This document shows positions 1-44,516 of a stretch of DNA of 64,000 nucleotides, piece by piece (positions within the stretch are counted from its first letter, which is position 1; each line of letters opens with the position of its first letter). The notes under the pieces were generated by a model, which saw only the letters and a program-made list of their open reading frames with translations, was not told the DNA's origin and ran no database searches. Position numbers and translations under genes: made by a program. The stretch lies in sequence record OR805294.1; one strand, 5' to 3'.

Positions 1-422
1 ACATCGGCACCCTGCGCATCGTGCGCACCGCTAACAAAGAGGTCGGAAGTGTGCTCGACCTAAAAGTTAACGGGGTAGTAGTAGGGCAAGCTTTCCCGCT
101 CTACAGCACAAAAACCCAGCGTAGCTGGAACGCAAGCATGCACGCTACCGTTAACGGTGTAGAGGTGCAGTTTGCACAGGAAGGCGTGTTCAGTGCAATC
201 CGCATTGCACGGGCGTTCGAGGATGCAGTAAAGTATGCCGTTAGCAACGGCGAACAAGGGCAACCCCTCCCCGCCCCGGCGGCGGCAGAAGCGCAAGCAG
301 AAGCGCAAGCAGAAGCCCCGGCGGCGCAGTCCGACGAGGCGCCGGAGACCCCGGCAGCCGAAGCTAAGCCCGCCCGCAAAGGCGGCAGCAAAGGCGGCAG
401 CAAAGGCGGCAGCAAAAAGTAA
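1..422 (+). CDS. Early hypothetical protein, 5'-truncated at the window edge; paralogue of 6828..7265; Ala/Glu/Pro linker and (KGGS)3KK tail
   Basis: Frame is open from position 3 (IGTLRIVRT...). Shares TKTQRxW and GVFSAIRIARA with 6828..7265. GC-rich codons. 12-bp repeat AAAGGCGGCAGC x3 at 378-413. Confidence 0.85.
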   Translation, partial: IGTLRIVRTANKEVGSVLDLKVNGVVVGQAFPLYSTKTQRSWNASMHATVNGVEVQFAQEGVFSAIRIARAFEDAVKYAVSNGEQGQPLPAPAAAEAQAEAQAEAPAAQSDEAPETPAAEAKPARKGGSKGGSKGGSKK

Positions 423-435
423 GCGCTGCTAACAC

Positions 436-464
436 AGGAAAGGGGCAACTGCCCCTTTCCTTTT
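436..464 (+). terminator. Intrinsic terminator
   Basis: AGGAAAGGGGC-AACT-GCCCCTTTCCT followed by TTT, just after the stop codon. Confidence 0.85.
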
Positions 465-474
465 ATGTCCTAGT

Positions 475-501
475 TGTAAACGCAAATTAATCTTATTTGC
501 A
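475..501. promoter_or_regulatory. 27-bp Fur-box-like palindrome
   Basis: TGTAAACGCAAAT-T-AATCTTATTTGCA. Confidence 0.65.
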
Positions 502-522
502 TTTGCACAAGTCAATCTCCGG

Positions 523-550
523 TTGCATTACTGCGGTAAGATGTTAGTAT
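523..550 (+). promoter_or_regulatory. sigma70-type early promoter
   Basis: TTGCAT-16-TAGTAT with extended -10 TG; GGAG RBS and ATG577 follow. Confidence 0.7.
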
Positions 551-576
551 ATATGTAGCTATACGGAGTAATTGCT

Positions 577-807
577 ATGAAGCGCAAGTACCTAAAGGCA
601 CAGTTCGAGCATGTCAGTGCCGGGCGAGTTGCAAAAGAACTCGACGAGAAGTTCAATTTCGTTGTAGGCGATAATGTACACTACTGGGCCATCTTCGAAA
701 CTAATGTCAAACCCGAAGTTCTACAAAAGGCAATTCATGACATGAACGGTGGTGCTTACTGCCATGCATATTCTATTCCGTATGAGGATGTAGAGGAGTA
801 TCTCTAA
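577..807 (+). CDS. Small early hypothetical protein (76 aa)
   Basis: Promoter and GGAG RBS upstream. Confidence 0.8.
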   Translation: MKRKYLKAQFEHVSAGRVAKELDEKFNFVVGDNVHYWAIFETNVKPEVLQKAIHDMNGGAYCHAYSIPYEDVEEYL

Positions 808-1021
808 TGCTCTACTATCGCGATGTTTATGCAGGTGTTTGCTGTTAAACTTGTATAGCCGGCACCAGGTCGCATATAACACGCCTAGCCCCATGCAAAC
901 TGCGGACATGATCCATTCACGCCTGCAGCGTATGTTCGAAGAATTCGGTTGCAAGCCCGATGGTTGCTCTGCTAGCATGTACGAGGATAAGACGCACATC
1001 ACATTAGCCTGGAGCAAGTAA
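807..1021 (+). pseudogene. Small hypothetical gene, probably with a 1-nt frameshift (or sequencing error) near 837-840
   Basis: ATG807 is coupled to the upstream TAA and has an AGGAG RBS, but stops after 13 aa. One extra T in GTTTG would join it to the 839..1021 frame (71 aa). Confidence 0.45.
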
Positions 1022-1312
1022 ATGGATATGTCGATTGTGAACAAGCGCTTCGAGAAAGAACTAGCGCTGTTTAATGTCGAAGTTCTCGGTAAGCGCACAG
1101 TGAATCATATAACGAAACCGAACATCGAAGTTTCGTTCAAACTAAAGGGTCATACTACTGAAAAAGAGATGACCACTGTTACTCAGCTCGCACGTCCCAT
1201 TATGGAGTATGTAAGCGGACGTAGGGTGGTCTGGGCACATACCGGTCTTTGGCGCTCAATGAAAGACGACCTCGAAGTAGCAGTGCTGACAATGAAGTTA
1301 TCCAAACAATAA
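1022..1312 (+). CDS. Small early hypothetical protein (96 aa)
   Basis: GGAG RBS; terminator follows the stop. Confidence 0.8.
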   Translation: MDMSIVNKRFEKELALFNVEVLGKRTVNHITKPNIEVSFKLKGHTTEKEMTTVTQLARPIMEYVSGRRVVWAHTGLWRSMKDDLEVAVLTMKLSKQ

Positions 1313-1314
1313 GA

Positions 1315-1427
1315 GAAAGGGGCAACTGCCCCTTTCCTTTTATGTCCTAGTTGTAAATGCAAATTAATCTTATTTGCATTTGCACAAGTCAATCTCCTGT
1401 TGCATTACTGCGGTAAGATGTTAGTAT
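1315..1427 (+). repeat. 113-bp intergenic cassette, copy 2 (palindrome at 1352-1378, promoter TTGCAT...TAGTAT)
   Basis: 111/113 identical to 438..550. Confidence 0.95.
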
Positions 1428-1467
1428 GTGTTTAGCAGTAACACATAACTAGCAGGAGCAATAGACA

Positions 1468-1716
1468 ATGGCTAAAGTATTGCATGTTAACAGCATCGGC
1501 AACATCGCCGAAGTGTTTACATCTGTAGACCTCGACAGCGCCTTGTTGCACGCAATCAAGCGCTGTGCATTGATGGGCAAGGTTAAGGTTGTTGGTCCCA
1601 ACGCTCCCGTGTTTGCTAGCCATTACGACGCACTGAGAGCGTACGACGTGCAGTGGCGCCTAGTTCCTCCGGGCTGCGGCGTTACTTTGTACGTCATCGC
1701 CGAGGACAACAACTAA
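1468..1716 (+). CDS. Small early hypothetical protein (82 aa)
   Basis: CAGGAG RBS after the cassette promoter. Confidence 0.8.
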   Translation: MAKVLHVNSIGNIAEVFTSVDLDSALLHAIKRCALMGKVKVVGPNAPVFASHYDALRAYDVQWRLVPPGCGVTLYVIAEDNN

Positions 1717-1727
1717 GGAGAGACATA

Positions 1728-2030
1728 ATGAATCTCGTTCATCTGTGGATCAACGGGCGTGCTGTGACTGCCCGCAAGGTTGTCAGTAAACACACTGTCC
1801 GCAATCCGAACAGTCCGATCGATATCGAGACTATCGACGTTGTTCGACTGCGTCTGCCCCGTGGTGTTCGTGCTAGCAGTTGGACACTCCGTAAGGCAGT
1901 GTACCAGCTCATGGAGCAAAGCTGTAGCTGCTCGAGAGACTGTTGTGGACACTGGTTCGGCGGTGCACGCAAGATCTACATTAACGGCAGAGACATCAGT
2001 GTCGTTGCCGGGTACCAGCGCAATTACTAA
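1728..2030 (+). CDS. Small Cys-rich hypothetical protein (100 aa, CSCSRDCCGHWFG)
   Basis: TAAGGAG RBS places the start at 1728 rather than 1653. Confidence 0.8.
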   Translation: MNLVHLWINGRAVTARKVVSKHTVRNPNSPIDIETIDVVRLRLPRGVRASSWTLRKAVYQLMEQSCSCSRDCCGHWFGGARKIYINGRDISVVAGYQRNY

Positions 2031-2060
2031 AGGAAAAGGGGCAACTGCCCCTTTCCTTTT
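2031..2060 (+). terminator. Intrinsic terminator (same GGGGCAACTGCCCC family)
   Basis: AAAGGGGC-AACT-GCCCCTTTCCTTTT. Confidence 0.85.
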
Positions 2061-2071
2061 ATCCATTAATG

Positions 2072-2144
2072 TGTAAACGCGAATAATTCTTATTTGCACA
2101 GGTCATTGAGATGCGAATGCAAACAAGAGGCATTCTTGATACGG
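2072..2144. promoter_or_regulatory. Two Fur-box-like palindromes (2072-2098, 2118-2144)
   Basis: TGTAAACGCGAAT-A-ATTCTTATTTGCA and TGCAAACAAGAGG-C-ATTCTTGATACGG. Confidence 0.6.
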
Positions 2145-2179
2145 TCGGGTGATAAGAATTGTTCACAAAAAGAAAAAGC

Positions 2180-2207
2180 TTGCGTTATGCTACACAGGTG
2201 CTAGTAT
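2180..2207 (+). promoter_or_regulatory. sigma70-type early promoter
   Basis: TTGCGT-16-TAGTAT with TGn. Confidence 0.65.
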
Positions 2208-2249
2208 GTGTATTGCAGTATCTATAAACATTAATAGCAGGATAAGAAA

Positions 2250-2570
2250 ATGGTTGACTTTAAAGGTTTTAACTGGGACGCACTAGTCCCAGTGGACAAC
2301 GTTTCTACAGTTTCCATTAAAAATCACTACGAGGAACTCCTACAAAGTTTTGTTGACAACGGCATAGACTATGTGTTAGTCCGGCTGTCCCAGGAACTGC
2401 CGCACTACGAGGATTCAGATTATCCCTGCTACAAATTGGTTGACAAGTATGCAGGATGGATAGTAGGTTGGGACTACTACGGATTTGTTGTGGAACGCAT
2501 GGACACGCACCTTTTCTTTGACAACTGCACTGCAAAGGGTGTAATGGACTTCCTGGAAGCCAACGGCTAG
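2250..2570 (+). CDS. Small acidic hypothetical protein (106 aa)
   Basis: CAGGA RBS, promoter upstream, terminator downstream. Confidence 0.8.
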   Translation: MVDFKGFNWDALVPVDNVSTVSIKNHYEELLQSFVDNGIDYVLVRLSQELPHYEDSDYPCYKLVDKYAGWIVGWDYYGFVVERMDTHLFFDNCTAKGVMDFLEANG

Positions 2571-2574
2571 CACA

Positions 2575-2604
2575 AAAAGGAAGGGGCGCAAGCCCTTTTC
2601 TTTT
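2575..2604 (+). terminator. Intrinsic terminator
   Basis: GGAAGGGGC-GCAA-GCCCTTTTC followed by TTTT. Confidence 0.75.
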
Positions 2605-2618
2605 GTCTGCAATTTCTG

Positions 2619-2645
2619 TGCAAATAAGACGCATTCTTGATTAGG
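2619..2645. promoter_or_regulatory. Fur-box-like palindrome
   Basis: TGCAAATAAGACG-C-ATTCTTGATTAGG. Confidence 0.55.
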
Positions 2646-2764
2646 CCTGATAATAAGTTCTTATTAACAACAAAGAAACTGAATAAGAATAATTCTGAAA
2701 AAATAACCCTGCAGCGTAATAAAAAGGGTTTGCAAATTGCAAGCCCTTTTTAATATGCGTTTGT

Positions 2765-2824
2765 TAAGATTAATTCTTATTTGTAATGATAATATTCCCG
2801 CCTTACAAATAAGAATTAATCTTA
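2765..2824. repeat. Perfect 22-bp inverted repeat with 16-bp spacer, built from two motif half-sites
   Basis: TAAGATTAATTCTTATTTGTAA (2765-2786) / TTACAAATAAGAATTAATCTTA (2803-2824). Confidence 0.9.
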
Positions 2825-2913
2825 GAACAAATATTCACTTGATTTTTCTCCTAACATAGTGTATGTGTATGCTGGATAAGATTAAGTCTTGTTTGCTTGT
2901 TACATTTTATATG

Positions 2914-2942
2914 TTGCAATGCTAAGGCAATGACACTATTAT
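2914..2942 (+). promoter_or_regulatory. sigma70-type promoter
   Basis: TTGCAA-17-TATTAT. Confidence 0.65.
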
Positions 2943-2973
2943 ATGTACAGCAACACAAAACAGGAGATATAAC

Positions 2974-3279
2974 ATGTCAGCAGAATTGAAGCGGTTGTTA
3001 GAGATTTTTCCAACCTTTAAATCATTCATTTATGCTGAAGGGGCATATGGCATTGATGTTTGGAAGGCTACGGGTAGTGTTACTTTGGAACAGGTATTCA
3101 ATGCTGTTAATGCAGGCAATGCAGAATGGCAATGTAAAGGTGATCCAACATGCAGCCTGGAACAAAACAGCATGTATATTTTCATTACTATTCAGGAACC
3201 AGACTACACAGGAATGGTTGACATTGATGTTTGTGTAAAGATTACTAACGGTAATGAAGTAAGTTATCAAATAGCATAA
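2974..3279 (+). CDS. Small hypothetical protein (101 aa)
   Basis: CAGGAG RBS; terminator follows. Confidence 0.8.
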   Translation: MSAELKRLLEIFPTFKSFIYAEGAYGIDVWKATGSVTLEQVFNAVNAGNAEWQCKGDPTCSLEQNSMYIFITIQEPDYTGMVDIDVCVKITNGNEVSYQIA

Positions 3280-3280
3280 T

Positions 3281-3312
3281 AAAGGAAAGGGGATTAATTC
3301 CCCTTTCCTTTT
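3281..3312 (+). terminator. Intrinsic terminator
   Basis: AAAGGAAAGGGGA-TTAAT-TCCCCTTTCCTTT followed by T. Confidence 0.85.
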
Positions 3313-3326
3313 ATGTATAATATACT

Positions 3327-3379
3327 TATAAATAAGAATTAATTTTATTTAATTAAAATTAGAATAATTCTTATTTGCA
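3327..3379. promoter_or_regulatory. Two adjacent Fur-box-like palindromes
   Basis: TATAAATAAGAAT-T-AATTTTATTTAAT and TTAAAATTAGAAT-A-ATTCTTATTTGCA. Confidence 0.6.
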
Positions 3380-3497
3380 CGATCCCGCACTTATAACACA
3401 AGTATATTACAAAAGCAAGAATAAAATTAACTTGACACACATATATAGAATATAGCACAATGTGTTTATAAATTATATTACTACAGGAGCGTTAACC

Positions 3498-3869
3498 ATG
3501 TTCAAATGCAAATTGTTTGTAGTAGATCCTGTTTATAACAACCTTTGCTACACTCAACAAATATGGCTCGAAAGTGACGTAAATGTGTGTAGTCAAATAA
3601 AGCGTATTATTTCTAACGCAGAATTGGCATGCGCAAATAGGATAGTAAATAATCCTCATAGTCCACTATGCGTTAAATCGGCAGCATTAAAAATGGTTAT
3701 GGACGGGCGCATTGACATCGAACTCAAAGATGTCGATAGTTACGTCGATCAATATAAAGACATTCTCCCTAGCACAAATATTTTGGGTGTTTTTAAACCG
3801 ACGTTTTTATCTAACTGGAAAGAAGAGTGTGAACTTTATTTCCTTACTTGTGTTGAAAAAGACAATTAA
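3498..3869 (+). CDS. Hypothetical protein (123 aa)
   Basis: CAGGAG RBS places the start at 3498; TTGACA at 3432. Confidence 0.75.
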   Translation: MFKCKLFVVDPVYNNLCYTQQIWLESDVNVCSQIKRIISNAELACANRIVNNPHSPLCVKSAALKMVMDGRIDIELKDVDSYVDQYKDILPSTNILGVFKPTFLSNWKEECELYFLTCVEKDN

Positions 3870-3875
3870 TATAAT

Positions 3876-4163
3876 ATGGAAGATGATTTAAAAAATATTG
3901 TTTCGAAGACTATCTTATCTAATAAAATTAAGATAGTCTCTTTACGTACTGTAGTAAAAGCTCAGTATAAAAGAGTAGACTTCCATTATAAGATAGAATG
4001 TGAAAATAGTTCTGCAAAACGTAATTTGGCACTTGCCCGTATATGCAAACCATTAGAACACACATTAGGTTCAAAACTTGTTTATGTAGATATTGTGCCT
4101 ATCAAGTTTAAGAAAGATGAAATGCCATCTACTATTCTATCAGTAAGTGTAATGACCGATTGA
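3876..4163 (+). CDS. Hypothetical protein (95 aa), possible distant paralogue of 1022..1312
   Basis: ORF directly after the previous gene. Confidence 0.7.
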   Translation: MEDDLKNIVSKTILSNKIKIVSLRTVVKAQYKRVDFHYKIECENSSAKRNLALARICKPLEHTLGSKLVYVDIVPIKFKKDEMPSTILSVSVMTD

Positions 4164-4210
4164 TAATTGGATTTGATAATTGGATTTGATAATTGGATTT
4201 GATATTTGGA
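4161..4210. repeat. 13-bp tandem repeat TGATAATTGGATT x3 plus one degenerate copy
   Basis: Read directly; each unit contains GATAAT and the array abuts the palindrome at 4209-4235. Confidence 0.95.
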
Positions 4211-4235
4211 AATATAATAATAATTCTTATTTGCA
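4209..4235. promoter_or_regulatory. Fur-box-like palindrome
   Basis: GAAATATAATAAT-A-ATTCTTATTTGCA. Confidence 0.6.
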
Positions 4236-4281
4236 ATTATAATAAATTCTTGTTTACTTTTAAAATAAAAGCAAATTCTAG

Positions 4282-4310
4282 TTGCATAGCTAGCGGCAAT
4301 GTGCTAGTAT
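4282..4310 (+). promoter_or_regulatory. sigma70-type promoter
   Basis: TTGCAT-17-TAGTAT with TGn. Confidence 0.75.
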
Positions 4311-4339
4311 ATTAAAAAATAAAGACAGGAGTGTTATTC

Positions 4340-4522
4340 ATGCAAACCAAAGCAACCGAGTTGGCAGTAGGCGATGTTGTTTTCTACAATGGCATGAAAA
4401 TGACTATCCAGAAAATTTCTAAAGGTCGGTGTGCAATAGATATTACACTAGTAAATACTTTGGCTAAACTCACATCTTATGTGACAGTCGACTACGACGA
4501 AGAATTTGAAGAAGTATTATAA
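4340..4522 (+). CDS. Small hypothetical protein (60 aa), possibly SH3/KOW-like beta protein
   Basis: CAGGAG RBS gives ATG4340; ELAVGDVV motif. Confidence 0.75.
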   Translation: MQTKATELAVGDVVFYNGMKMTIQKISKGRCAIDITLVNTLAKLTSYVTVDYDEEFEEVL

Positions 4523-4539
4523 TGCAGAAATTATAGTCA

Positions 4540-4568
4540 TAAGAAAAGGGGCAATGCCCCTTTTCTTA
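4540..4568. terminator. Bidirectional terminator
   Basis: TAAGAAAAGGGGC-AAT-GCCCCTTTTCTTA between convergent genes. Confidence 0.85.
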
Positions 4569-4805
4569 TAGTCCCAACAAATGCTTGCCACTTTTGACTT
4601 GCATCATACGTACTTTCTTTTTGCGCATTTGCGTTCTTACGTTCAGGCTGTTGGGACCTTTGAAGCTATACAGTATTTCAGTAGTCCCGTCTTCATAGTT
4701 GCGTACCACATTTGCAACAATTTGACTGCCTTCCTGGAACGCTTCGATAAACACGCAGTAATTGAAATTTTCCTTGTTAGCGTTATGTGCGCGTAGTTGC
4801 ATCAT
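4566..4805 (-). CDS. Small hypothetical protein (79 aa)
   Basis: Minus-strand CAGGAG RBS, promoter at 4844-4871, ends in the bidirectional terminator. Confidence 0.75.
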   Translation of the reverse strand: MMQLRAHNANKENFNYCVFIEAFQEGSQIVANVVRNYEDGTTEILYSFKGPNSLNVRTQMRKKKVRMMQVKSGKHLLGL

Positions 4806-4843
4806 TTTCTGTTACTCCTGCGTTGTTTTGCTTTGTTATGTGT

Positions 4844-4871
4844 AGTATACGCTATGTGTGTACTAATGCAA
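4844..4871 (-). promoter_or_regulatory. sigma70-type promoter
   Basis: TTGCAT-16-TATACT on the minus strand. Confidence 0.65.
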
Positions 4872-4949
4872 GAATTTTCTTCCATTTTCTTTCAAATAAA
4901 ATGTTATTAGCATCTATTCTGTTATAACATTTTCTATGACTTCGTGTTT

Positions 4950-4976
4950 TGCAAATAAGAATTAATCGCATTTGCA
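4950..4976. promoter_or_regulatory. Fur-box-like palindrome
   Basis: TGCAAATAAGAAT-T-AATCGCATTTGCA. Confidence 0.65.
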
Positions 4977-5158
4977 TTCCTACCTATCTGCCTAAAATTT
5001 AGGCAGCCTGGGTGATTGTCTCCCCCGCCCTATTACTGGTCTCTGTATAAAGATAATAGCATATTTGCATCTGCATGCAAGCATTTTTTGTAGAATTTTC
5101 CTCTTGACATTCCTTGCTGTAGGCTACATTATGCACACACAAAGCAGGAGATACCATT

Positions 5159-5539
5159 ATGGCACTCATAGCATTAGTCGCAACTGCATATGACAAAGAA
5201 GGCGATAAGTTCGACTATGTTCGATATCTTAAAGCTCATATCAATTTTGTGTCTGCTCAAGATCAACTGAAAGAATGGATCAAAAACAAAATTGATGCAA
5301 GTATAGCAGAAGTTAAAATCGGATTACGTGCAGAAATCGAAGTATTGGCCTATTTGGGAAACTATATAAGCCATAGTCACCGGATTATTAGTCCCGCCGG
5401 AATCATTATGTACATTGTTCTTGATGAGAAGTATGTTAACGAACTTCACGGTCAAATTTCTAATGCAATTGATTGTGAAGAAAAGAAACATGTAATAAAG
5501 AAAGAAGAAAACGTCACTTATATTGATTTTAAAAAATAA
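5159..5539 (+). CDS. Hypothetical protein (126 aa)
   Basis: TTGACA-17-CATTAT promoter from 5104; CAGGAG RBS. Confidence 0.8.
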   Translation: MALIALVATAYDKEGDKFDYVRYLKAHINFVSAQDQLKEWIKNKIDASIAEVKIGLRAEIEVLAYLGNYISHSHRIISPAGIIMYIVLDEKYVNELHGQISNAIDCEEKKHVIKKEENVTYIDFKK

Positions 5540-5540
5540 C

Positions 5541-5569
5541 TTGCATTAGCTGTAACGTATATGTATTAT
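5541..5569 (+). promoter_or_regulatory. sigma70-type promoter for a candidate sRNA
   Basis: TTGCAT-17-TATTAT. Confidence 0.65.
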
Positions 5570-5574
5570 GTACT

Positions 5575-5733
5575 CAAGTTTGCAGCAAGACGTATTAATT
5601 TGTTTTGCTGTTAGTTGTAACTCCTGCTACCAAGTATGTGTCGAGCTAATGCTCCTGACTTGGTCTTTGGTACACTGGTTTGGGTGTACCGTTCTTGAGC
5701 TGCAAAGGGCTTGCCCGGAGCAGCTTTTTTTTT
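5575..5733 (+). ncRNA. Candidate ~155-nt structured small RNA
   Basis: Promoter upstream, several hairpins, GC-rich 3' stem plus T9 tract, no RBS-led ORF. Confidence 0.55.
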
Positions 5734-5813
5734 GACCAATATTATTCATTTGACAAAAAATAATAATTAAAAATATAATAGCTTATTATATAACTTCTCA
5801 TATTAGGTTAATT

Positions 5814-6185
5814 ATGAAACTTATTATTGCTTCAATTGCATTGTCTTTGTCCACACTAGTTTCTGCAGAATCTATTTCTGAAGTTAAGATAACTAAAGAA
5901 ACATGCCTTACACTTCTGGAATTATCTAAGATTCATGTTGATATGGTAGTAAATGAACATATGAATGCAATACAAATTGCATCTCATATGGATATTGTAT
6001 CTAATTTATATAAGAATAATAATAGTAAATGGCTTGCATTCTTGCAGGCTCAAGCAAATATTTCAAAATTAATTGATGACGTATATGAGTTTTCATCTAC
6101 TGAAGAAAGAAAGATTATTCCTCTAGCCATATTTAACGGTTGTATGGAAAGAGTTGGTAATACTTTTGAAATATATAAGAAATAA
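5814..6185 (+). CDS. Putative exported protein with signal peptide (123 aa)
   Basis: MKLIIASIALSLSTLVSA-E signal pattern; TTGACA-18-TATAAT at 5750-5779. Confidence 0.75.
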   Translation: MKLIIASIALSLSTLVSAESISEVKITKETCLTLLELSKIHVDMVVNEHMNAIQIASHMDIVSNLYKNNNSKWLAFLQAQANISKLIDDVYEFSSTEERKIIPLAIFNGCMERVGNTFEIYKK

Positions 6186-6186
6186 T

Positions 6187-6495
6187 ATGTATAATGTATA
6201 TGTAGTCCACGGAATAATCAACACAGGTGTTGAGACTAATATATGTGATATAGAACGTTACGTTGCAAGTAACGACTTCTATGCTGTAGCAAAGTTTCTT
6301 AATTTTAAAGAACATATGGTACCAAACACACGATTAATTGTTTCTGGATTAAATACTAAAAAGAACATATTAGAATTGGAATTAAATTTATCGAAAAAAG
6401 AATATGTAGTATCAGGTTTTAGAGTTACATCACCTGATATAAACAAATGTATTGAATATTACCTGTGTAGAAGGATATTTAAGTTACATGATTGA
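6187..6495 (+). CDS. Hypothetical protein (102 aa)
   Basis: ATG just after the upstream stop. Confidence 0.65.
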   Translation: MYNVYVVHGIINTGVETNICDIERYVASNDFYAVAKFLNFKEHMVPNTRLIVSGLNTKKNILELELNLSKKEYVVSGFRVTSPDINKCIEYYLCRRIFKLHD

Positions 6496-6634
6496 ATTTA
6501 TATTAAAATCCCTTTTATTAACTTCAATTGTCAGTGTTGGCATACTACTGATATTCATTATTATTTCATTGTTAATGTTTGGCTTAGCACCGATAGTTCC
6601 ATTCCTTATTTAATTTTAATTATTTGCAAGCAAA

Positions 6635-6661
6635 TGCAAATGCGAATAATTCTTATTATCC
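6635..6661. promoter_or_regulatory. Fur-box-like palindrome
   Basis: TGCAAATGCGAAT-A-ATTCTTATTATCC. Confidence 0.6.
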
Positions 6662-6827
6662 AGCAGGCCACTGTACCTAATCTTCGTTAGATAAAATCTA
6701 TTAGAATCTACAAAGTCCATTAAAACGTTCAATTGTACATGGTGGCCAGATCTGCATATACTACACACATGAAGCAAGCAAACAGCGCTTCATAAACAAA
6801 CCCAAATACAGCTAGGAGTTCCAAATC

Positions 6828-7265
6828 ATGACCAAAGCAACCGTTACCGTCGAGCAATCCGCAATCAAACTGGTCCGCCGCAACCTGGAAGGGCACCGGC
6901 AGGCCCTGCTGCTGAACGGCGTCGAAGTAGGCAGCAGCGAAGCGTTCTACAAGACCAAAACCCAGCGCACCTGGTCGGCGAAGATCGACGCCAACATCAA
7001 CGGCAAGGACATCGTCCTCGAACAGAAAGGCGTGTTCAGCGCGATCCGGATCGCCCGGGCGATGGAACAAGCAATCCTGTTCATCCTGACCGACGGCAAA
7101 GAAGGCGCCGAGATGCCGGCCAGCACGCTGAGCAAGGAAGAGCAAGCCCACAACCTGGTCAAGGCAGTAGTCCAGGTCGCCGACCACGCAGTCCAGTCCG
7201 GCGACGCTGCCCCGGCGAAGAAAGGCAGCTCGAAGAAGCGCAAAGAAGCCCAGCCGGAAGCATAA
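6828..7265 (+). CDS. Early hypothetical protein (145 aa), paralogue of 1..422, basic C-tail
   Basis: TAGGAG RBS, GC-rich host-like codons, shared motifs, GAAA-loop terminator downstream. Confidence 0.9.
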   Translation: MTKATVTVEQSAIKLVRRNLEGHRQALLLNGVEVGSSEAFYKTKTQRTWSAKIDANINGKDIVLEQKGVFSAIRIARAMEQAILFILTDGKEGAEMPASTLSKEEQAHNLVKAVVQVADHAVQSGDAAPAKKGSSKKRKEAQPEA

Positions 7266-7278
7266 TCCGGACTACACC

Positions 7279-7304
7279 GAGAAAGCACCGAAAGGTGCTT
7301 TCTC
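7279..7304 (+). terminator. Intrinsic terminator
   Basis: GAGAAAGCACC-GAAA-GGTGCTTTCTC. Confidence 0.85.
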
Positions 7305-7310
7305 TATGAC

Positions 7311-7370
7311 TGTTAATAACAAATATTCTTATTTGCATCTATTCTGACATAATAATAACTCTTATTTACA
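7311..7370. promoter_or_regulatory. Two Fur-box-like palindromes (7311-7337, 7344-7370)
   Basis: TGTTAATAACAAA-T-ATTCTTATTTGCA and CTGACATAATAAT-A-ACTCTTATTTACA. Confidence 0.55.
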
Positions 7371-7421
7371 AATCATACTGAATAGTGTATTTTACACACT
7401 AAACATTGTAGGTAATATAAA

Positions 7422-7910
7422 TTGAATATATTTGTGACTGACACAAATCCTTATGTATGTGCCAAACATCATTGTGATGTTCATCTAAGAAAGATGATAG
7501 TAGAAACAGCACAATTGTTAAGCACCACTCATTATATAATAAACGGATATACTCCTGCATATAAACCTACTCATAAAAATCATCCATGTGCCGTTTGGAT
7601 TAGAGAAAGTTCAAAAAACTATGAATGGACTTATGAACTTCTTACAAATCTTATAAATGAATTTGAATATAGATTTGACAAACAACATGCAACTAAAATT
7701 CACCTTTCGTCATTAAAAACTATACCAAAACTCCCTAATATAGAAAGAACAGAGTTTGTCTTAGTTATGCCAGACGAATTTAAAACAGGTAATGTAACAC
7801 ATTCATATCAGTTATATTTAAATGACAAATTTAAAGAATGGGCATCGAGATCTAACAGACCCATTTATGCTACATATACAAAGACACCTAAACCATATTT
7901 TATTAGTTGA
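7422..7910 (+). CDS. Pyrimidine-dimer DNA glycosylase-family protein (endonuclease V-related)
   Basis: MNIF...HCDxHxxKMIVETAQLLST and YKPTHKNHPCAVW motifs; TTG start. Confidence 0.8.
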   Translation: MNIFVTDTNPYVCAKHHCDVHLRKMIVETAQLLSTTHYIINGYTPAYKPTHKNHPCAVWIRESSKNYEWTYELLTNLINEFEYRFDKQHATKIHLSSLKTIPKLPNIERTEFVLVMPDEFKTGNVTHSYQLYLNDKFKEWASRSNRPIYATYTKTPKPYFIS

Positions 7911-7982
7911 AATATAATAAAAATGATTGACATGTACATAAGATCATATTATGCTGTATAAAACAGCAAGGAGTAGATATAC

Positions 7983-8216
7983 ATGTACCGCAAACTGAAT
8001 ACAAATCCACGCCCAATGCCAAAAACAAAGGCAATTCCAACTAAATTTGTCATTCAGTACACTGCACGGAATAAAGCAACAGAAAGTTTGTTCAAAAAAA
8101 GAACTATTACATTACATGCGTTTGGGCGTCTCGATGCACAAACACTCCTATCAAAACATATCCGAAAAAATAATTTGGAATTAGGTGTAATTATTGATTT
8201 CGGTGAAACAGTTTAG
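7983..8216 (+). CDS. Small basic hypothetical protein (77 aa)
   Basis: TTGACA-17-TATGCT at 7927-7955; AAGGAG RBS. Confidence 0.8.
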   Translation: MYRKLNTNPRPMPKTKAIPTKFVIQYTARNKATESLFKKRTITLHAFGRLDAQTLLSKHIRKNNLELGVIIDFGETV

Positions 8217-8227
8217 TTAGTGACATA

Positions 8228-8254
8228 GGGAAAGGGGCAGTTGCCCCCTTTCCC
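8228..8254 (+). terminator. Intrinsic terminator (inverted copy of the GGGGCAACTGCCCC hairpin)
   Basis: GGGAAAGGGGC-AGTT-GCCCCCTTTCCC. Confidence 0.75.
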
Positions 8255-8274
8255 ATTATTAAGTCAATTGCAAA

Positions 8275-8301
8275 TGCAAATACAAATTATTCTTATTTGC
8301 A
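8275..8301. promoter_or_regulatory. Fur-box-like palindrome
   Basis: TGCAAATACAAAT-T-ATTCTTATTTGCA. Confidence 0.65.
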
Positions 8302-8483
8302 CAGATCAGACCATCCATTCCAATAACATTACTAACTTGGATGAAATGGCTTACTACAATGAACTTTGAATACTAAAAAGTACCTAAGAAGTAATTCCAG
8401 TTGTATCTAAAACACTATGTGTTATTATACATATAGTGTTTTTATTTCTTATAACTATATTCAATAATAATGGTAAAACATAT

Positions 8484-8807
8484 ATGATTGAAGTAATTAA
8501 ATGCATTATATGTAATGAATCACCCCGTCCTTGTGCATTTGCAGCATTTATTACTCAAATGCGTCAAGTAGTAAAACCTCATGCAACTATAACTAGTTGG
8601 AATATTCTGCCCGGCATTAATGATGATCCAACTAGTTATATTCATGCATTCAGTATAAAATCAAAAACAGCATACGATATTAATCAAGCGGTTACCTTAT
8701 TACTAATGTCATTATATAATGCTAGTGAATATAAGACTAGCTACATACCTACTTCGTTTAAAGACTATGAATCTACAATAAAGCATTTATCTAAGATCAA
8801 ACAATAA
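8484..8807 (+). CDS. Hypothetical protein (107 aa)
   Basis: ORF with ATG8484; promoter-like TTGTAT-16-TATTAT at 8401. Confidence 0.6.
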   Translation: MIEVIKCIICNESPRPCAFAAFITQMRQVVKPHATITSWNILPGINDDPTSYIHAFSIKSKTAYDINQAVTLLLMSLYNASEYKTSYIPTSFKDYESTIKHLSKIKQ

Positions 8808-8871
8808 CCAGTTGCATATTTACAAATATACATGTATGCTAATATGTATACACAATCATGAGTACATTATC

Positions 8872-9027
8872 ATGACAAAAGAAATTGCTTTTACTGAAGG
8901 ATTAAAAGCAGGCACTCAAATAAAAGAAGGCAAAGCTATCCTAACTGACTTCTTTCGATATTTCAATTCCTTACCAACTAATATGAGAACTTCTTTTATT
9001 ATCGGTATCAAAACCGGTAGAAACTAA
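8872..9027 (+). CDS. Small hypothetical protein (51 aa)
   Basis: TTGCAT-17-TATGCT at 8812-8840 overlaps the track's start, so ATG8872 is more likely. Confidence 0.55.
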   Translation: MTKEIAFTEGLKAGTQIKEGKAILTDFFRYFNSLPTNMRTSFIIGIKTGRN

Positions 9028-9114
9028 TAAGCATATTAATTTTCATATTTTGGTAGACAAAGGTACTCACTGGATGCATACTGTATACATACAGAACATA
9101 CGGAGTACAAAGGG

Positions 9115-9384
9115 ATGGATGCGCGTAGCCTGCTTCGCCTGATAGAAGACCTTCCTATAGCTGTCTTCGGCAGCACAATGGATATTGTTCATCGAGTCAA
9201 TTTTGAAGCTCTGGACAATGCCGCCCACACCGACGGGGTAAAAGTCCACGAAGACGGAACCAACCGTTATACAGACGCTTTTGTCGATTGTTGGCTCCGC
9301 AGCGTCGAAACAGTTTTGGCCTGTTGCGATTTTGTGACCGAAGACGCAGCGAAGTGGTATATCGAGCACGGTGTCAAGTTTTGA
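9115..9384 (+). CDS. Small acidic hypothetical protein (89 aa)
   Basis: GGAG RBS; GC-rich. Confidence 0.75.
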   Translation: MDARSLLRLIEDLPIAVFGSTMDIVHRVNFEALDNAAHTDGVKVHEDGTNRYTDAFVDCWLRSVETVLACCDFVTEDAAKWYIEHGVKF

Positions 9385-9414
9385 CATCCTCTGCCGCGCC
9401 TGCAGATAAAAAGG

Positions 9415-9457
9415 TTGACGTAGACTAGCAATAGACACATAATAATTACAACGCAAC
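9415..9457 (+). promoter_or_regulatory. sigma70 promoter, twin of 10816..10858
   Basis: TTGACG-17-CATAAT followed by AATTACAACGCAAC. Confidence 0.8.
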
Positions 9458-9482
9458 GCAACTAGCCCTGGAGGGCAAAACT

Positions 9483-9632
9483 ATGTGTAACATTCAATGC
9501 ATGAACAGCAAAGCCGGCGAGTCCTACGCATGGATTTGGAGCGATAGCGATAGCGATATCTGCTACGAAGTTATCTTCCGGCATGGCCAAGTCCTCACCC
9601 AGGTTTGGCTCGGCTATGATATTGTAGCCTAA
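9483..9632 (+). CDS. Small protein (49 aa, MCNIQCMNSKAGESYAWIW...), not in the ORF track
   Basis: GGAGG RBS after the promoter; hairpin AAAGCCCCG/CGGGGCTTT at 9641-9665 downstream. Confidence 0.65.
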   Translation: MCNIQCMNSKAGESYAWIWSDSDSDICYEVIFRHGQVLTQVWLGYDIVA

Positions 9633-9681
9633 CACCAACTAAAGCCCCGTCCCAGGCGGGGCTTTACCGAAGGAAAAGATC

Positions 9682-9891
9682 ATGATCGAACAACTGAAAG
9701 ACATGCTCGTAGCGCAACGCATGCGCATGAACCAACTCGAAAAACTGCGCTACACCGGACGCGTCGCTAGCGAGTTGCATGCCCACGCCAGGGAATTGTG
9801 TGAAGCCTTGGAACTGGCAATTGCAAATGCCCAGTGCCTGGAAATGCGCAAGTTCGAAGAAGCCGCCCTGCACGCCCTGTTCGCACAATAG
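9682..9891 (+). CDS. Small helical hypothetical protein (69 aa)
   Basis: AAGGA RBS; GC-rich codons. Confidence 0.75.
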   Translation: MIEQLKDMLVAQRMRMNQLEKLRYTGRVASELHAHARELCEALELAIANAQCLEMRKFEEAALHALFAQ

Positions 9892-9924
9892 CCCATCGCG
9901 CACAACCCGACAAGGAAACCAAAC

Positions 9925-10416
9925 ATGAGCACCACAATCCCTGATTCGATTAACCCGGGTGATCTTCCTGAAATCGGCCAGCCATTGGCCGATGGAACCT
10001 TCTTTGCCCGCCAATGGCTCAATGGCAAAGAATACGCCTACGTCGATCTCGGCAAAAGCGCCGAGTTCACTGGAGAATGGGGCGAGTATGGGCTGGACGT
10101 GGCCAGCGCCGTTAGCTATCGAGACGGAGCTTCGAACACGGTCGCCATGGCTGAAGCTGGCAGCCCGATTGCCAAGCAAGCTCTTGAGATCGGAGAAGGC
10201 GTATTCATTCCCTCTGTTCTGGAACTGGCTCTTCTGTTCTCCGCCAAGCAAGCCGGCGAGCTGTCTGGTTTCGCAGATCGCTGGTATTGGTCGAGTTCGC
10301 AATACTCCGCCTACGGCGCCTTCAACACGCACCTCGGCGACGGCGACACAGGCCTCGACCCCAAGTACGTCGACTTCCGTGTCCGCCCCGTCCACAAGAT
10401 TCTCATTCTTCAGTAA
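9925..10416 (+). CDS. DUF1566 (Lcl/CLec-like) domain protein of Pseudomonas prophage type
   Basis: C-terminal WYWSSSQYSAYGAF...DG...FRVRPVH motif; AAGGA RBS. Confidence 0.75.
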   Translation: MSTTIPDSINPGDLPEIGQPLADGTFFARQWLNGKEYAYVDLGKSAEFTGEWGEYGLDVASAVSYRDGASNTVAMAEAGSPIAKQALEIGEGVFIPSVLELALLFSAKQAGELSGFADRWYWSSSQYSAYGAFNTHLGDGDTGLDPKYVDFRVRPVHKILILQ

Positions 10417-10493
10417 TCTAGCCCCGGAGATAACACAATGAACCTGCACCTCTCCAAGCATTGTCTGCGCCCGCGCGCGACTAAGGAACAGTC

Positions 10494-10742
10494 ATGAGCA
10501 TTGCAAGCTACTTCTTGTTGTCCACTATTGTCTTCAACAACAACACCTACGCTCGTTCGACGACAGTGGACACCATTGTTGTTCGTGACCTCAGCAAGGA
10601 AGACTGCGAGGCGCTCAAGCGTGAGCGCGAAGCAGTTGTTAAGAACATCCGGGCAAGGAACTTCGGTAGCTCTGGTGATACGAGCGGTATCGCCGTGGGC
10701 TTTTCCAAACATAGCTGCACAAAGATGGAGGGTACGAAATGA
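10494..10742 (+). CDS. Small hypothetical protein (82 aa)
   Basis: TAAGGA RBS. Confidence 0.7.
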   Translation: MSIASYFLLSTIVFNNNTYARSTTVDTIVVRDLSKEDCEALKREREAVVKNIRARNFGSSGDTSGIAVGFSKHSCTKMEGTK

Positions 10743-10815
10743 CTCAACTGGCCACGGCGAGCAAACATTGCCCGGAAGGTGCTAGCTGAACGCCTGGCGG
10801 AACAATAAATAAAAG

Positions 10816-10858
10816 TTGACGTGGCCAAGCGAAGGGCGCATAATAATTACAACGCAAC
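10816..10858 (+). promoter_or_regulatory. sigma70 promoter, twin of 9415..9457
   Basis: TTGACG-17-CATAAT followed by AATTACAACGCAAC. Confidence 0.8.
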
Positions 10859-10882
10859 ACAGCAAGCCCCGGAGGCGCAACC

Positions 10883-11083
10883 ATGACCCAGATCGTAGAT
10901 GTCAAGCAAATTGCAATTGATGCAAACCGTCGCCCTGCCTACAATGCGGTCATGGTGCGCTGGTTGATGCAGGAAGCTGAATTGCACCGTAGCTGCGGTC
11001 GCACCGCTACCCTGTTCTGCATCGTTCGCAACCGCCCTGACGGCACACAGCGCCAGCTTGTGCAGCTTGTGGCTAGCGAGTAA
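10883..11083 (+). CDS. Small hypothetical protein (66 aa)
   Basis: GGAGG RBS after the promoter. Confidence 0.8.
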   Translation: MTQIVDVKQIAIDANRRPAYNAVMVRWLMQEAELHRSCGRTATLFCIVRNRPDGTQRQLVQLVASE

Positions 11084-11113
11084 CTTCTACAACCCTACGC
11101 CCAGGAGGCCGTC

Positions 11114-11278
11114 ATGAATGCTGCACTGGCTAGACTTCAAAACGAACGTTGCATGTTACTTCGCCGGATGCTTTGCAGCAAATGGCACGGATTCTGTTTT
11201 GCAGGTCACCCCTGGGCAGAACAAGCCCGTAGTCTGCACAACGAATCCAAGTGCATCCGCGAACATTACAGTAAGTAA
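11114..11278 (+). CDS. Small Cys/His-containing protein (54 aa, MNAALARLQNERCMLL...), not in the ORF track
   Basis: CAGGAGG RBS; the track's 11118 frame is a shadow. Confidence 0.7.
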   Translation: MNAALARLQNERCMLLRRMLCSKWHGFCFAGHPWAEQARSLHNESKCIREHYSK

Positions 11279-11312
11279 TCCAATCCCACCGGATCTTACT
11301 GAGGATAAGATA

Positions 11313-11769: not shown

Positions 11770-11971
11770 TTCTATTAACTGGGAGGGATTAATAAAAATA
11801 TTTTCTTGACAATAGTAGGTATAGGATAATTCTATTATACTGAAAATTGTTATAGAAAAATATAGTTGACAAATTTTGAAAGTGATGAATTCCAACACCG
11901 GGTGGCTGTAAGCTGAGACGGTTGACATTTGGTGAGTGGTGGATTGTTACGCGGGTAGATTTTGAAATTCA

Positions 11972-12029
11972 CCGTATATAGGTTCACTTATGTCACTTAT
12001 GAGTCATTTCCGTATATAGGTTCACTTAT
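11972..12029. repeat. 20-bp direct repeat CCGTATATAGGTTCACTTAT x2
   Basis: Copies at 11972-11991 and 12010-12029. Confidence 0.95.
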
Positions 12030-12166
12030 AACACATATAAGTTACTTCCATTCGCTCATAAGTAACGTTCGATTATAAGTATCTTTTGCTTATATGTTTA
12101 CTCATAGGTTATGATAAATCACATTCAGTACTGTTACTACACACATTCACGCCTATAAGTCATTTC

Positions 12167-12211
12167 ACTGTACTGTACTGTACTGTACTGTACTGTACTG
12201 TACTGTACTGT
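12167..12211. repeat. (ACTGT)9 microsatellite
   Basis: Read directly. Confidence 0.95.
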
Positions 12212-12560
12212 ATCATATATACTTTATACAATTCTCTTCTTTATCATGCTGCTAGTAAACAATCTATGTTATTATGCGTAGAAATGTTGTATAGTGTATA
12301 TTATAGTAAGTATAGTATGATTGCTATACAATATTCCTAATCTCATATTGTTGTTTAACTTTCCAAATCTGTCTCGGCTGTTCTACTTTATGTCTCATAG
12401 TTACGTATTTTCTTTATCTAGGCGTATACGTAATAAACAAAGTAACTTTATAAAAAATTACTATAACTCATTAAAATGGGTATACGGTGAAAGAAACATT
12501 TATAGATATATTACACGATACTCATTATGTAGAGCACTATATAGAGGCTATTAAATAAAA

Positions 12561-34091: not shown

Positions 34092-34097
34092 TTTTGG

Positions 34098-43673: not shown

Positions 43674-44516
43674 ATGAATACAAAAATTGTAGTTAATTAT
43701 ATTAATAATAAAGAAATGTTAAAGGAAATACATCGTAGTAAAAATTCATTCTGCGAATATATTTCCCCAGAGTATAAAGATTACGATATTATCTTTACTT
43801 CAAAAGAAGACTGTCTGAAACAAGAAAATATAAACGCAGCAATACTTAAACGAGCAGAGCGTTTAACTCAAGTACAGATAGATGAATATGCATTAAGAAC
43901 AAATACTAGTTCTAAAAAAGCAAAAGCATCTATAACCCAAGTAGATCCTGCAACAATAAATAAACATGATGTTGTTTTTCGTGTTATCACATACGAACAT
44001 ATTCCAGAAGATCATGATAGGAAAAAGACAAAAAAATCAATTAAAGACTATCATGTTAAGTTAAATTTTACTCCTTTTAAGCATTTTATTATAGACGAAA
44101 ATAATAACTTAGTAGAAGTAGGCAGAAGCCACAGCAAAAAAGGAGAGTTTTGCTTAACTGGAGGATCTATATCAGATAGATTAGCAAAAATGTTTATGTT
44201 GTTAATTGACAAATTCGGTCAAAAAAGCAACTGGCGTGGATATTCATATCTAGATGAAATGAAGGGACAAGCTTTACTTCAGTTAGCGTCTATGGGGTTG
44301 CAATTCGACGAACATTTAAGTGATAATCCCTTTGCATATTACACTTCGTCTATAAACAATTCTTTTACTAGGGTATTCAACATAGAAAAACGTAATCAAA
44401 TAATCAGGGATGATTTATTACAAAATATGGGACAAAATCCTAGCCTTACTAGACAATTAGAACACGATGAGCAAATTCGGTTGCTCAGAGAATTAAATGA
44501 TTCTAAAGATGATTAA
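43674..44516 (+). CDS. gp55: Late-transcription sigma factor, T4 gp55-like
   Basis: YINNKEML; NWRGYSYLDEM; NPFAYYT...NSF.R....EK; TTGACT-17-TAAAAT promoter at 43621. Confidence 0.85.
   Translation: MNTKIVVNYINNKEMLKEIHRSKNSFCEYISPEYKDYDIIFTSKEDCLKQENINAAILKRAERLTQVQIDEYALRTNTSSKKAKASITQVDPATINKHDVVFRVITYEHIPEDHDRKKTKKSIKDYHVKLNFTPFKHFIIDENNNLVEVGRSHSKKGEFCLTGGSISDRLAKMFMLLIDKFGQKSNWRGYSYLDEMKGQALLQLASMGLQFDEHLSDNPFAYYTSSINNSFTRVFNIEKRNQIIRDDLLQNMGQNPSLTRQLEHDEQIRLLRELNDSKDD

Follow-up and report, generated by a model that had tools for sequence, protein, structure and literature searches.

The stretch analysed here (the window, 64,000 nt) corresponds to bases 186,001–250,000 of the genome of the Pseudomonas phage Ettore (OR805294.1), a PA5oct-like jumbo phage of the genus Wroclawvirus; positions 1–9000 of the window are 100% identical to bases 186,001–195,000 of this record. 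The early genes at its beginning are interspersed with 27-bp dyads, imperfect palindromes that resemble the operators of the ferric uptake regulator Fur, and these dyads are the subject of our analysis. Ten relatives of Ettore share 96–98% identity across 70–92% of window 1–9000. The dyad-rich part corresponds to 27,974–36,160 of PA5oct and falls within the 39-kb direct terminal repeat of that phage. Both the early dyad-bearing DNA and the whole Ettore genome have a GC content of about 33%. In PA5oct the genes of the terminal repeat (gp34–gp105) are highly transcribed 5 min post-infection, the early genes are strongly expressed in iron-replete LB medium, and rifampicin stops phage production, which shows that the host RNA polymerase is used (PMC7318152). 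As regulatory signals, the RNA sequencing (RNA-seq) paper on PA5oct and its preprint give −10/−35 boxes and terminators only (PMC7318152).

The original prediction for this region started from nine copies of the 11-mer TCTTATTTGCA, and their coordinates and strands proved to be exact. All copies in the window lie at or before position 8301 (0.18 copies expected; none of 100 shuffled sequences reached nine). It had also listed 15 27-mers as members of one family. Thirteen of these match TGCAAATAAGAATNATTCTTATTTGCA at 19 or more of 26 positions, a score that no 27-mer in the other 55.6 kb of the window attains and for which a Markov null model gives 0.03 sites per 8.4 kb. The remaining two, at 2118 (17/26) and 2759 (18/26), have scores that occur elsewhere as well. 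For the dyad search we used a dyad matrix with a fixed seed (an iterative half-site matrix drifted). This matrix finds 26 sites in the whole Ettore genome, all between 166,639 and 194,301; the other 238 kb and the shuffled sequences have none. The cluster is real, but its extent had been set too small with about 15 sites: it comprises 26 dyads and begins about 19.4 kb before the window. Its interval coincides with the block of early genes in the terminal repeat that is highly transcribed.

Conservation in related phages had been proposed as a check, and with the same matrix dyads are present in PA5oct (24), MIJ3 (19) and PAC2 (22). Ettore has two dense arrays, both outside the window, which lie about 8.7 and 27.5 kb into the repeat. 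The first (Ettore 166,620–166,765) follows the terminator of PA5oct ncRNA001 and lies upstream of the gp038 homologue, the second (Ettore 185,500–185,620) lies upstream of the gp086 homologue. The sites had been described as always intergenic, and this agrees with the curated annotation of PA5oct: in a region that is 67% coding, 21 of the 24 dyads are strictly intergenic, and the other three lie inside open reading frames (ORFs) of 39–73 codons (two of about 40), which we regard as doubtful. The same cassettes and dyads, again all intergenic, occur on the metagenomic contigs L127, L131 and L132 (GC content 47–49%), the proteins of which are 32–48% identical to those of Ettore or have no homologue there. 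Each of these contigs has an array, which on L127 and L131 is located directly upstream of a gp086-family gene. A scan of viral contigs with the phage-specific arm gave single chance matches only.

The palindrome is imperfect, with 6–11 of 13 self-complementary pairs per 27-mer. One arm, ATTCTTATTTGCA, is much better conserved than its partner and is promoter-proximal in 20 of the 26 dyads. The weak arm keeps the pattern TGCAAAT-R-M-GAAT, a conservation that was not selected for by the search, and the dyad symmetry is therefore real. Conservation is limited to the 27 bp, and in the flanks the information content falls to 0.1–0.5 bit.

The dyads are embedded in cassettes of a fixed order (Table 1): a terminator hairpin is followed by the dyad, a weak −35 (often TTGCAT), a TGn-extended −10 (TAGTAT), and a short leader with a ribosome-binding site. 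A dyad begins 7–25 nt after each hairpin of the AAAGGGG-loop-CCCCTTTCCTTTT family, and terminator-like sites are enriched (20 versus 10.4 expected). Generic sigma-70 consensus scans were uninformative in this 33% GC DNA, with 46 matches versus 42 expected. Nine cassettes, of which three are from Ettore and six from contigs L127 and L131, are compact: the −35 begins 15–21 nt past the dyad, and the dyad centre is located near −63 to −69. At the other sites the promoter predicted by reading the sequence lies 20–130 nt from the dyad. A position 20–100 bp upstream of the −35, as originally predicted, is thus about right. The poor fit to classical repression that had been noted is also apparent, since the dyads end 15–130 nt before the −35 and overlap neither the −35 nor the −10. 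This placement rules out the geometry of a classical repressor, but not binding of Fur. A gene block at window 9,100–11,300, with a GC content of 55–60%, has a second cassette family (TTGACG-N17-CATAAT-AATTACAACGCAAC) that is free of dyads, which points to two promoter classes in the early region.

In several respects these cassettes resemble the PeSL cassettes of T4-type phages, in which indels between relatives end as well (PMC2839356, PMC4122927). Both join a terminator to a sigma-70 early promoter whose −35 is preceded by an AT-rich stretch, both are intergenic in a plastic region rich in small orphan genes, and in both indels between close relatives break at the cassettes. The Ettore cassettes thus combine a stem-loop and a predicted sigma-70 promoter between small orphan genes with indels that end in the cassettes. 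Among Ettore, PA5oct, MIJ3, and PAC2 the breakpoints on cassettes are at 551/1314, 2619–2629, 3292/3310 to 3367, and 8312 to 8346. Window 551–1314 is absent from PA5oct and MIJ3, and the duplicated cassette copies at 423–576 and 1313–1467 bracket this missing gene module. MIJ3 and PAC2 have an additional gene between the terminator and the arm beginning at 3367, and in MIJ3 an additional gene directly follows the dyad at 8275–8301. Unlike T4 PeSL, the Ettore cassettes have a defined 27-bp dyad as their AT-rich upstream stretch, their hairpin precedes the dyad instead of being part of the promoter, and their promoters combine an extended −10 with a weak −35 (TTGCAT).

Whether the dyads belong to the Fur boxes depends on the register in which they are compared. 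Scoring against the E. coli 19-mers GATAATGATAATCATTATC and TGATAATnATTATCA gave 10–14/19 versus a background of 9.3–9.9 and was discarded because the register is wrong. The Xanthomonas Fur box is a 9-1-9 palindrome, AATGAgAATcATTctCATT, with which the E. coli 19-mer can be aligned only when it is shifted by 3 bp; validated Xanthomonas boxes score 13–17/19 with the centre base counted (PMC1790865). In the 9-1-9 register the 26 Ettore dyads match AATGAGAATNATTCTCATT, a Xanthomonas/proteobacterial consensus, at 12–16 of 18 positions (mean 13.9; 24 of 26 dyads at 13 or more), a range similar to that of the validated Xanthomonas boxes. We also scanned the genome with the Fur consensus, which contains no information from the phage. 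At a threshold of 14/18 or more, 17 matches were found in the 28.4 kb of the early region versus 7 in 259 kb, an enrichment of about 22-fold; at 15/18 or more, seven matches lie inside the early region and none outside.

Further support comes from bacterial genomes. The exact phage half-site with its centre, GAATNATTCTTATTTGCA, was searched in one genome per bacterial species, with matches in at least 120 of these genomes; 51 of the sites are in loci with a GC content of 0.5 or higher, and no P. aeruginosa is among the matches listed. The many matches in high-GC Proteobacteria show a string that is unexpected there by chance. The left flank of the bacterial sites, which was outside the search pattern, is conserved as TAATGCGAAT or AAATGAGAAT. 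Pfam assigned four of ten genes near such sites to TonB-dependent receptors and one to a periplasmic solute-binding protein, with Pfam families including Fe3+-binding proteins. Using a profile built from these receptors, we found that 14 sites among the matches listed are followed by a TonB-dependent receptor gene at a distance of up to about 400 nt, and 11 of these at a distance of up to 100 nt. In the 51 natural sites, the unselected arm has the sequence ATTC-[G/T]-[C/T]-ATT, and the same two-state K/Y degeneracy is seen in the phage arms. As four independent lines of evidence, register score, consensus scan, receptor-promoter sites and arm degeneracy all support the originally predicted likeness to Fur operators at the level of sequence membership. 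Boxes for Fis, IHF, RpoN (−12/−24), GacA, TyrR/PhhR, and PurR-type regulators were also considered and fitted poorly.

Like known Fur boxes, which can be written as AATGAkAATnATTmTCATT or as an array of GATAAT hexamers, the dyads have a 19-bp core, dyad symmetry, an invariant AAT-N-ATT centre, GAGAAT/GCGAAT arm variants, the K/Y degeneracy, and putative extra half-sites in 6-bp phasing. Unlike known Fur boxes, they are present in about 26 copies within 28 kb of a virulent phage and lie upstream of the promoters instead of over the −35/−10. They also differ by a majority arm that lacks the consensus C, by the conserved TGCA flank, and by the polarity of the strong arm relative to transcription.

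Table 1. Dyads, cassette elements and related features. Positions refer to the window unless another sequence is named; the Fur match is the number of 18 positions that agree with AATGAGAATNATTCTCATT in the 9-1-9 register.
Feature	Position	Strand	Fur match	Remarks
Dyad TGTAAACGCAAAT-T-AATCTTATTTGCA	475–501	+	13/18	after terminator 436–461; −35 begins 21 nt downstream
Dyad	1352–1378	+	14/18	in duplicated 154-bp cassette 1313–1467 (pair 423–576)
Dyad TGTAAACGCGAAT-A-ATTCTTATTTGCA	2072–2098	+	15/18	weaker second copy 2118–2144
Single-arm site	2619–2645	-		exact 11-mer with poor partner arm; inter-phage indel breakpoint 2619–2629
Two facing weaker sites	2759–2785, 2804–2830	.		ATTCTTATTTGTA arm in each
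Two adjoining dyads	3327–3353 (weak), 3353–3379 (strong)	+	14/18 and 16/18	
Dyad with strong right arm	4209–4235	+	14/18	46 nt before TTGCAT 4282–4287, N17, TAGTAT 4305–4310
Near-perfect dyad TGCAAATAAGAAT-T-AATCGCATTTGCA	4950–4976	-	15/18	between divergent genes (minus-strand 4566–4805, plus-strand 5159–5539)
Dyad TGCAAATGCGAAT-A-ATTCTTATTATCC	6635–6661	+	16/18	upstream of gp098-like gene
Dyad and weaker copy	7311–7337, 7344–7370	+		after terminator 7279–7304; downstream TTTACA (7391) N16 TAATAT
Dyad TGCAAATACAAAT-T-ATTCTTATTTGCA	8275–8301	+	14/18	final dyad of the cluster, among the strongest
Terminator hairpin, AAAGGGG-loop-CCCCTTTCCTTTT family	436–461	+		
Further terminators of this family	1315–1336, 2035–2054, 2579–2599, 3287–3306, 7279–7304, ~8229–8250			
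Predicted early promoter	523–550	+		TTGCAT, 16-nt spacer, TGt-TAGTAT extended −10; read from sequence
Predicted promoters of the same type	1400–1427, 2180–2207, 4282–4310			
gp098-like gene	6828–7265	+		gp038/gp086/gp098 paralog family, as is the gene at 1–422
TTGACG-N17-CATAAT-AATTACAACGCAAC cassettes	9413–9450, 10815–10852			without dyad
Fur-consensus clusters of RaK2-like phages	L267 3352–3475; Klebsiella phage RaK2 225,143–225,866; phage Muenster 339–1055			

We propose that the 27-bp dyads are operators of the host Fur protein that lie inside the early regulatory cassettes of the terminal repeat. The 19-bp core AAT-R-M-GAAT-N-ATTC-K-Y-ATT would represent a Fur box of the GAGAAT/GCGAAT type. 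The TTTGCA flank may add a half-site in 6-bp phase (ATTCTT-ATTTGC-ATTTGC), similar to arrays of GATAAT hexamers, to which several Fur dimers can bind; the overlap of multi-dimer Fur sites in 6-bp steps (PMC2189734) offers an explanation for the conservation of this flank. The upstream placement, together with the strong expression under iron-replete conditions, makes classical occlusion unlikely and suggests that Fur most likely acts from upstream. The most likely role of the sites would thus be a modulation of the early promoters from upstream. Iron-loaded Fur might serve as a positive factor, as an anti-silencer on the 33% GC DNA, or as a graded modulator, and immediate-early expression would thereby be coupled to the iron status of the host. 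Occupancy by Fur, the sign of its effect and its physiological purpose are what we infer from the pattern of the sites. Binding of the dyads by host Fur appears probable to us; that the dyads act from upstream as Fur operators of the early cassettes and tie immediate-early expression to iron status is put forward more tentatively, as a reading with slightly less than even odds.

There are precedents for Fur acting in this way. In a Pseudomonas, a Fur box located 92 bp upstream of the bfr start site has a positive effect (PMC6922518), and at ftnA Fur reverses silencing by H-NS, as cited in the same article (PMC6922518). As in the cases of upstream-acting Fur in E. coli (ftnA), Salmonella (hilD), Neisseria, and Pseudomonas (bfr; see also PMC3089636), the sites in Ettore lie tens of bp before the promoter, on AT-rich DNA and in a host with xenogeneic silencers. 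While those cases concern one or a few promoters, Ettore has a bank of about 17. Operators for the host Fur on phage DNA are known from cargo genes of temperate phages, namely sitABCD of lambdoid phages and stx1. There, a single accessory operon to the benefit of the lysogen is concerned, whereas the Ettore sites are on the own early promoters of a virulent phage. Our literature search found no description of Fur-box arrays in virulent phages or on a virulent phage's own early promoters. What appears to be new is the bank of putative Fur operators on the early cassettes of a virulent jumbo phage; Fur operators on phage cargo genes were already known.

Several observations weigh against this interpretation. 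The consensus C of the Fur box is replaced by T in 35 of the 52 Ettore arms (the better-conserved arm is ATTCTTATT). This C pairs with the guanine that is read by Arg57 in Fur-DNA structures (PMC4506495), so that in many dyads just one arm offers the Arg57-G contact. Counted by arms, the canonical C/G occurs in 15 of 52 in Ettore and in 16 of 34 on relatives, mostly in one arm per dyad; in the natural sites upstream of receptor genes, too, a single arm has it. The unselected arm of the natural sites does not show the TGCA flank that the phage conserves. Within the compact cassettes as well as outside them, the distance from dyad to promoter varies by half a turn of the helix, which argues against a stereospecific contact with RNA polymerase. 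Genome scans of E. coli suggest that Fur does not often activate directly from upstream sites (PMC2189734), and the PA5oct transcriptome paper mentions no iron-related host response (PMC7318152). Moreover, the case for Fur is wholly sequence-based and partly cross-species.

It is conceivable, though on balance unlikely, that a phage protein, early-expressed or delivered with the virion, reads the dyad and that the likeness to Fur is mimicry or coincidence. Such a protein would either activate the early cassettes upon entry or shut them down when early gives way to middle expression. As candidate we considered the gp038/gp086/gp098 family, orphan GC-rich paralogs in a 33% GC phage (the gp038 homologue is encoded at Ettore 167,139–167,843). 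In its members, a beta-rich N-domain (about 90 residues) is joined through an acidic linker to a basic tail of the KKGSKK type. A HMMER search of 1.8 billion representative proteins revealed only about 20 clusters of this family. For the N-domain, an AlphaFold model based on 13 sequences reached a pLDDT of 84 and shows six strands and a helix, while a 7-sequence gp098 alignment gave a pLDDT of 49. A word-index search for homologues of the gp098 family, Foldseek against PDB and BFVD and a PDB profile search gave nothing significant, the best PDB hit being the single-stranded DNA-binding 4psn (E 0.05).

It is position that links this family to the dyads. The two densest arrays precede the gp038-like and gp086-like genes, and one dyad precedes the gp098-like gene. 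On contigs L127 and L131 the array is again paired with a gp086-family gene, and on L132 the array precedes a different gene on a contig that also carries a family gene. Furthermore, gp038 of PA5oct was found in virions by mass spectrometry, the model of the N-domain is confident, and its best matches, weak as they are, are single-stranded DNA-binding folds. Two features, the TGCA flank and the strong arm's polarity, extend beyond the 19-bp Fur core. Extended −10 promoters are independent of −35 recognition, so that an anti-sigma factor like AsiA of T4 would not silence the cassettes. On the other hand, Pfam and PHROGs revealed no recognisable DNA-binding family among 79 early PA5oct proteins, the sole "DNA binding" label falling on a pyrimidine-dimer glycosylase-like protein. 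The gp038/gp086/gp098 family has no match to a DNA-binding family in Pfam, PHROGs, or PDB sequences, and the fold matches of its N-domain are not significant. The family-bearing loci L134 and L137 have no dyads, and L133 has one half-site only. The detailed match to natural Fur boxes, including the K/Y degeneracy, would have to be coincidence. The family is a lead only.

If host Fur does bind, as we consider probable, the dyads could also serve to titrate it. With 26 dyads in each repeat, a packaged genome has 52, and replication multiplies them; they would sequester Fur and derepress iron uptake of the host, and the iron would serve phage enzymes such as ribonucleotide reductase (RNR) or QueE. 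All evidence for membership in the Fur boxes applies equally to this idea, the dense arrays have no obvious single target promoter, and Ettore indeed encodes a class I RNR and a radical-SAM QueE. Titration of Fur by multicopy Fur boxes is known and forms the basis of the FURTA assay. However, the dyads are mostly single, one per early cassette and in a constrained position, and a pure sink needs none of that. About 50 sites per genome are few compared to the thousands of Fur molecules reported per E. coli cell, and in terms of quantity a decoy looks weak during early infection. At the time when phage copies are numerous, 93% of the transcripts are already of phage origin, and for the 698 host genes that were differentially expressed at a multiplicity of infection of 50 the PA5oct paper mentions no iron or siderophore response, which is a weak point (PMC7318152). 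With one site per cassette, about 52 sites per packaged genome and no iron response mentioned, titration seems less likely than Fur acting on the early promoters from upstream, and we regard it as improbable.

Fur sites on phage DNA are not confined to PA5oct-like phages. The scan of viral contigs with the Fur consensus gave at least 120 contigs, many of them with arrays of 5–10 sites that are 23–46 bp apart. A T5-like array family comprises 401 matching records, and L380, L362, L271, L365, and L282 belong here as well. In Escherichia phage DT571/2 (L380), 12 of the 16 matches in 10 kb, four of them with 18/18, lie in the gene-free stretch 6,829–8,725 of the left terminal repeat. This stretch is the repeat-rich, untranslated part of the repeat that is under discussion as the injection stop signal of T5, for which a preprint invokes DnaA boxes and describes the host protein as unsolved, with no mention of Fur (10.1101/866236). 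RaK2-like jumbo phages, distant relatives of PA5oct, have 5–6 Fur-consensus sites where the terminal repeat that PhageTerm predicts for phage Muenster begins (Table 1). In addition, the IMG/VR contigs L283, L319, L314, L260, L344, L355, L326, and L278 (GC content 0.21–0.53) have 5–15 Fur-consensus sites spaced by 23–46 bp; some of these contigs may be proviruses with host flanks.

By analogy to the T5 injection stop, Fur bound to arrays in the first-entering terminal repeat might pause, anchor or protect the incoming DNA. The 12 Fur-consensus matches in the left terminal repeat of a T5-like phage and the array at the start of the predicted repeat of RaK2-like jumbo phages would agree with this, and so would the two arrays about 8.7 and 27.5 kb into the Ettore repeat. 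As in the T5 region, arrays of the same kind of site then lie on gene-free DNA of a long, first-entering terminal repeat. Unlike the T5-like phages with one tight array in untranslated DNA, which the literature reads through DnaA boxes, Ettore has its sites mostly dispersed, single and coupled to promoters. We found no report of two-step injection for PA5oct-like phages, and the link to T5 is a sequence observation of our own analysis. For Ettore we consider such a role quite improbable. Finally, it is very improbable that no protein reads the dyad at all and that it is a patch of homology in mobile terminator-promoter cassettes, the copies of which recombination keeps similar: the indel breakpoints do fall on cassettes and on the dyad itself, and T4-type PeSL cassettes behave likewise (PMC2839356), but conservation stops at the 27 bp, the dyad symmetry of the arms was not imposed by the search, other cassettes of the same repeat (TTGACG-N17-CATAAT at 9413 and 10815) lack the dyad, and the dyad persists in relatives with 32–48% protein identity.

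Some further features of the window were recorded. The deposited annotation of Ettore for window 1–8,300 has many short minus-strand ORFs over GC-rich plus-strand genes and intergenic repeats; ETTORE_0373, for example, is drawn across the gp086-like gene. For this part, the RNA-seq-curated annotation of PA5oct is more credible. A T4 gp55-like late sigma factor (ETTORE_0452, window 43,674–44,516) adjoins SbcCD-like genes and indicates a T4-type scheme of late transcription on the host RNA polymerase. Window 5543–5742 harbours a candidate small RNA, in which a promoter-like TTGCAT-N17-TATTAT is followed by an ORF-free stretch of about 160 nt and by a GC hairpin with a T9 terminator. It folds far better than shuffled sequences (z = −3.9), PA5oct has an unannotated gap at the homologous position, and a stretch on contig L133 (849–1060) resembles it as judged by eye; an Rfam search of the window, including this candidate, gave zero matches. 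At window 11,800–12,250 a conserved element, CAACACCGGGTGGCTGT...GGTGGATTGTTACGCGGGTAGATTTTGAAAT, is followed by tandem repeats (GTACT about 15 times, TATAGGTTCACTTAT). This is the position of the right terminal-repeat boundary of PA5oct (39,080), and contigs L128, L129, and L133 end with the same element, which may be a terminase or repeat-boundary signal.

Among the 79 early PA5oct proteins (7,200–42,000), Pfam also detected a dual-specificity phosphatase, an Ead/Ea22-like protein and a homologue of the ribosome modulation factor (RMF; E 2.5e-5). The PA5oct relative Paride, described by Maffei et al. in 2024, reportedly kills dormant cells, and the RMF homologue of the early region may be of interest in this context.

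If Fur binds to the dyads, the take-off of infection in the PA5oct-like group would depend on the iron status of the host. Paride and PA5oct, which belong to this group, are both under consideration for use in therapy against P. aeruginosa, and an iron dependence, if true, would be relevant to iron-poor infection sites and to dormant cells. Fur-site arrays as a shared feature of phage terminal repeats are a more speculative idea. It is possible but doubtful that PA5oct-like, RaK2-like, and T5-like phages share a strategy of placing operators of the host Fur on the DNA that enters first, with Fur as a general host factor of DNA entry or immediate-early expression. The arrays of T5 and RaK2 may nevertheless hint at a general principle, and they provide a testable candidate for the unsolved factor of the T5 injection stop: Fur could be the long-sought host protein that acts at this signal.

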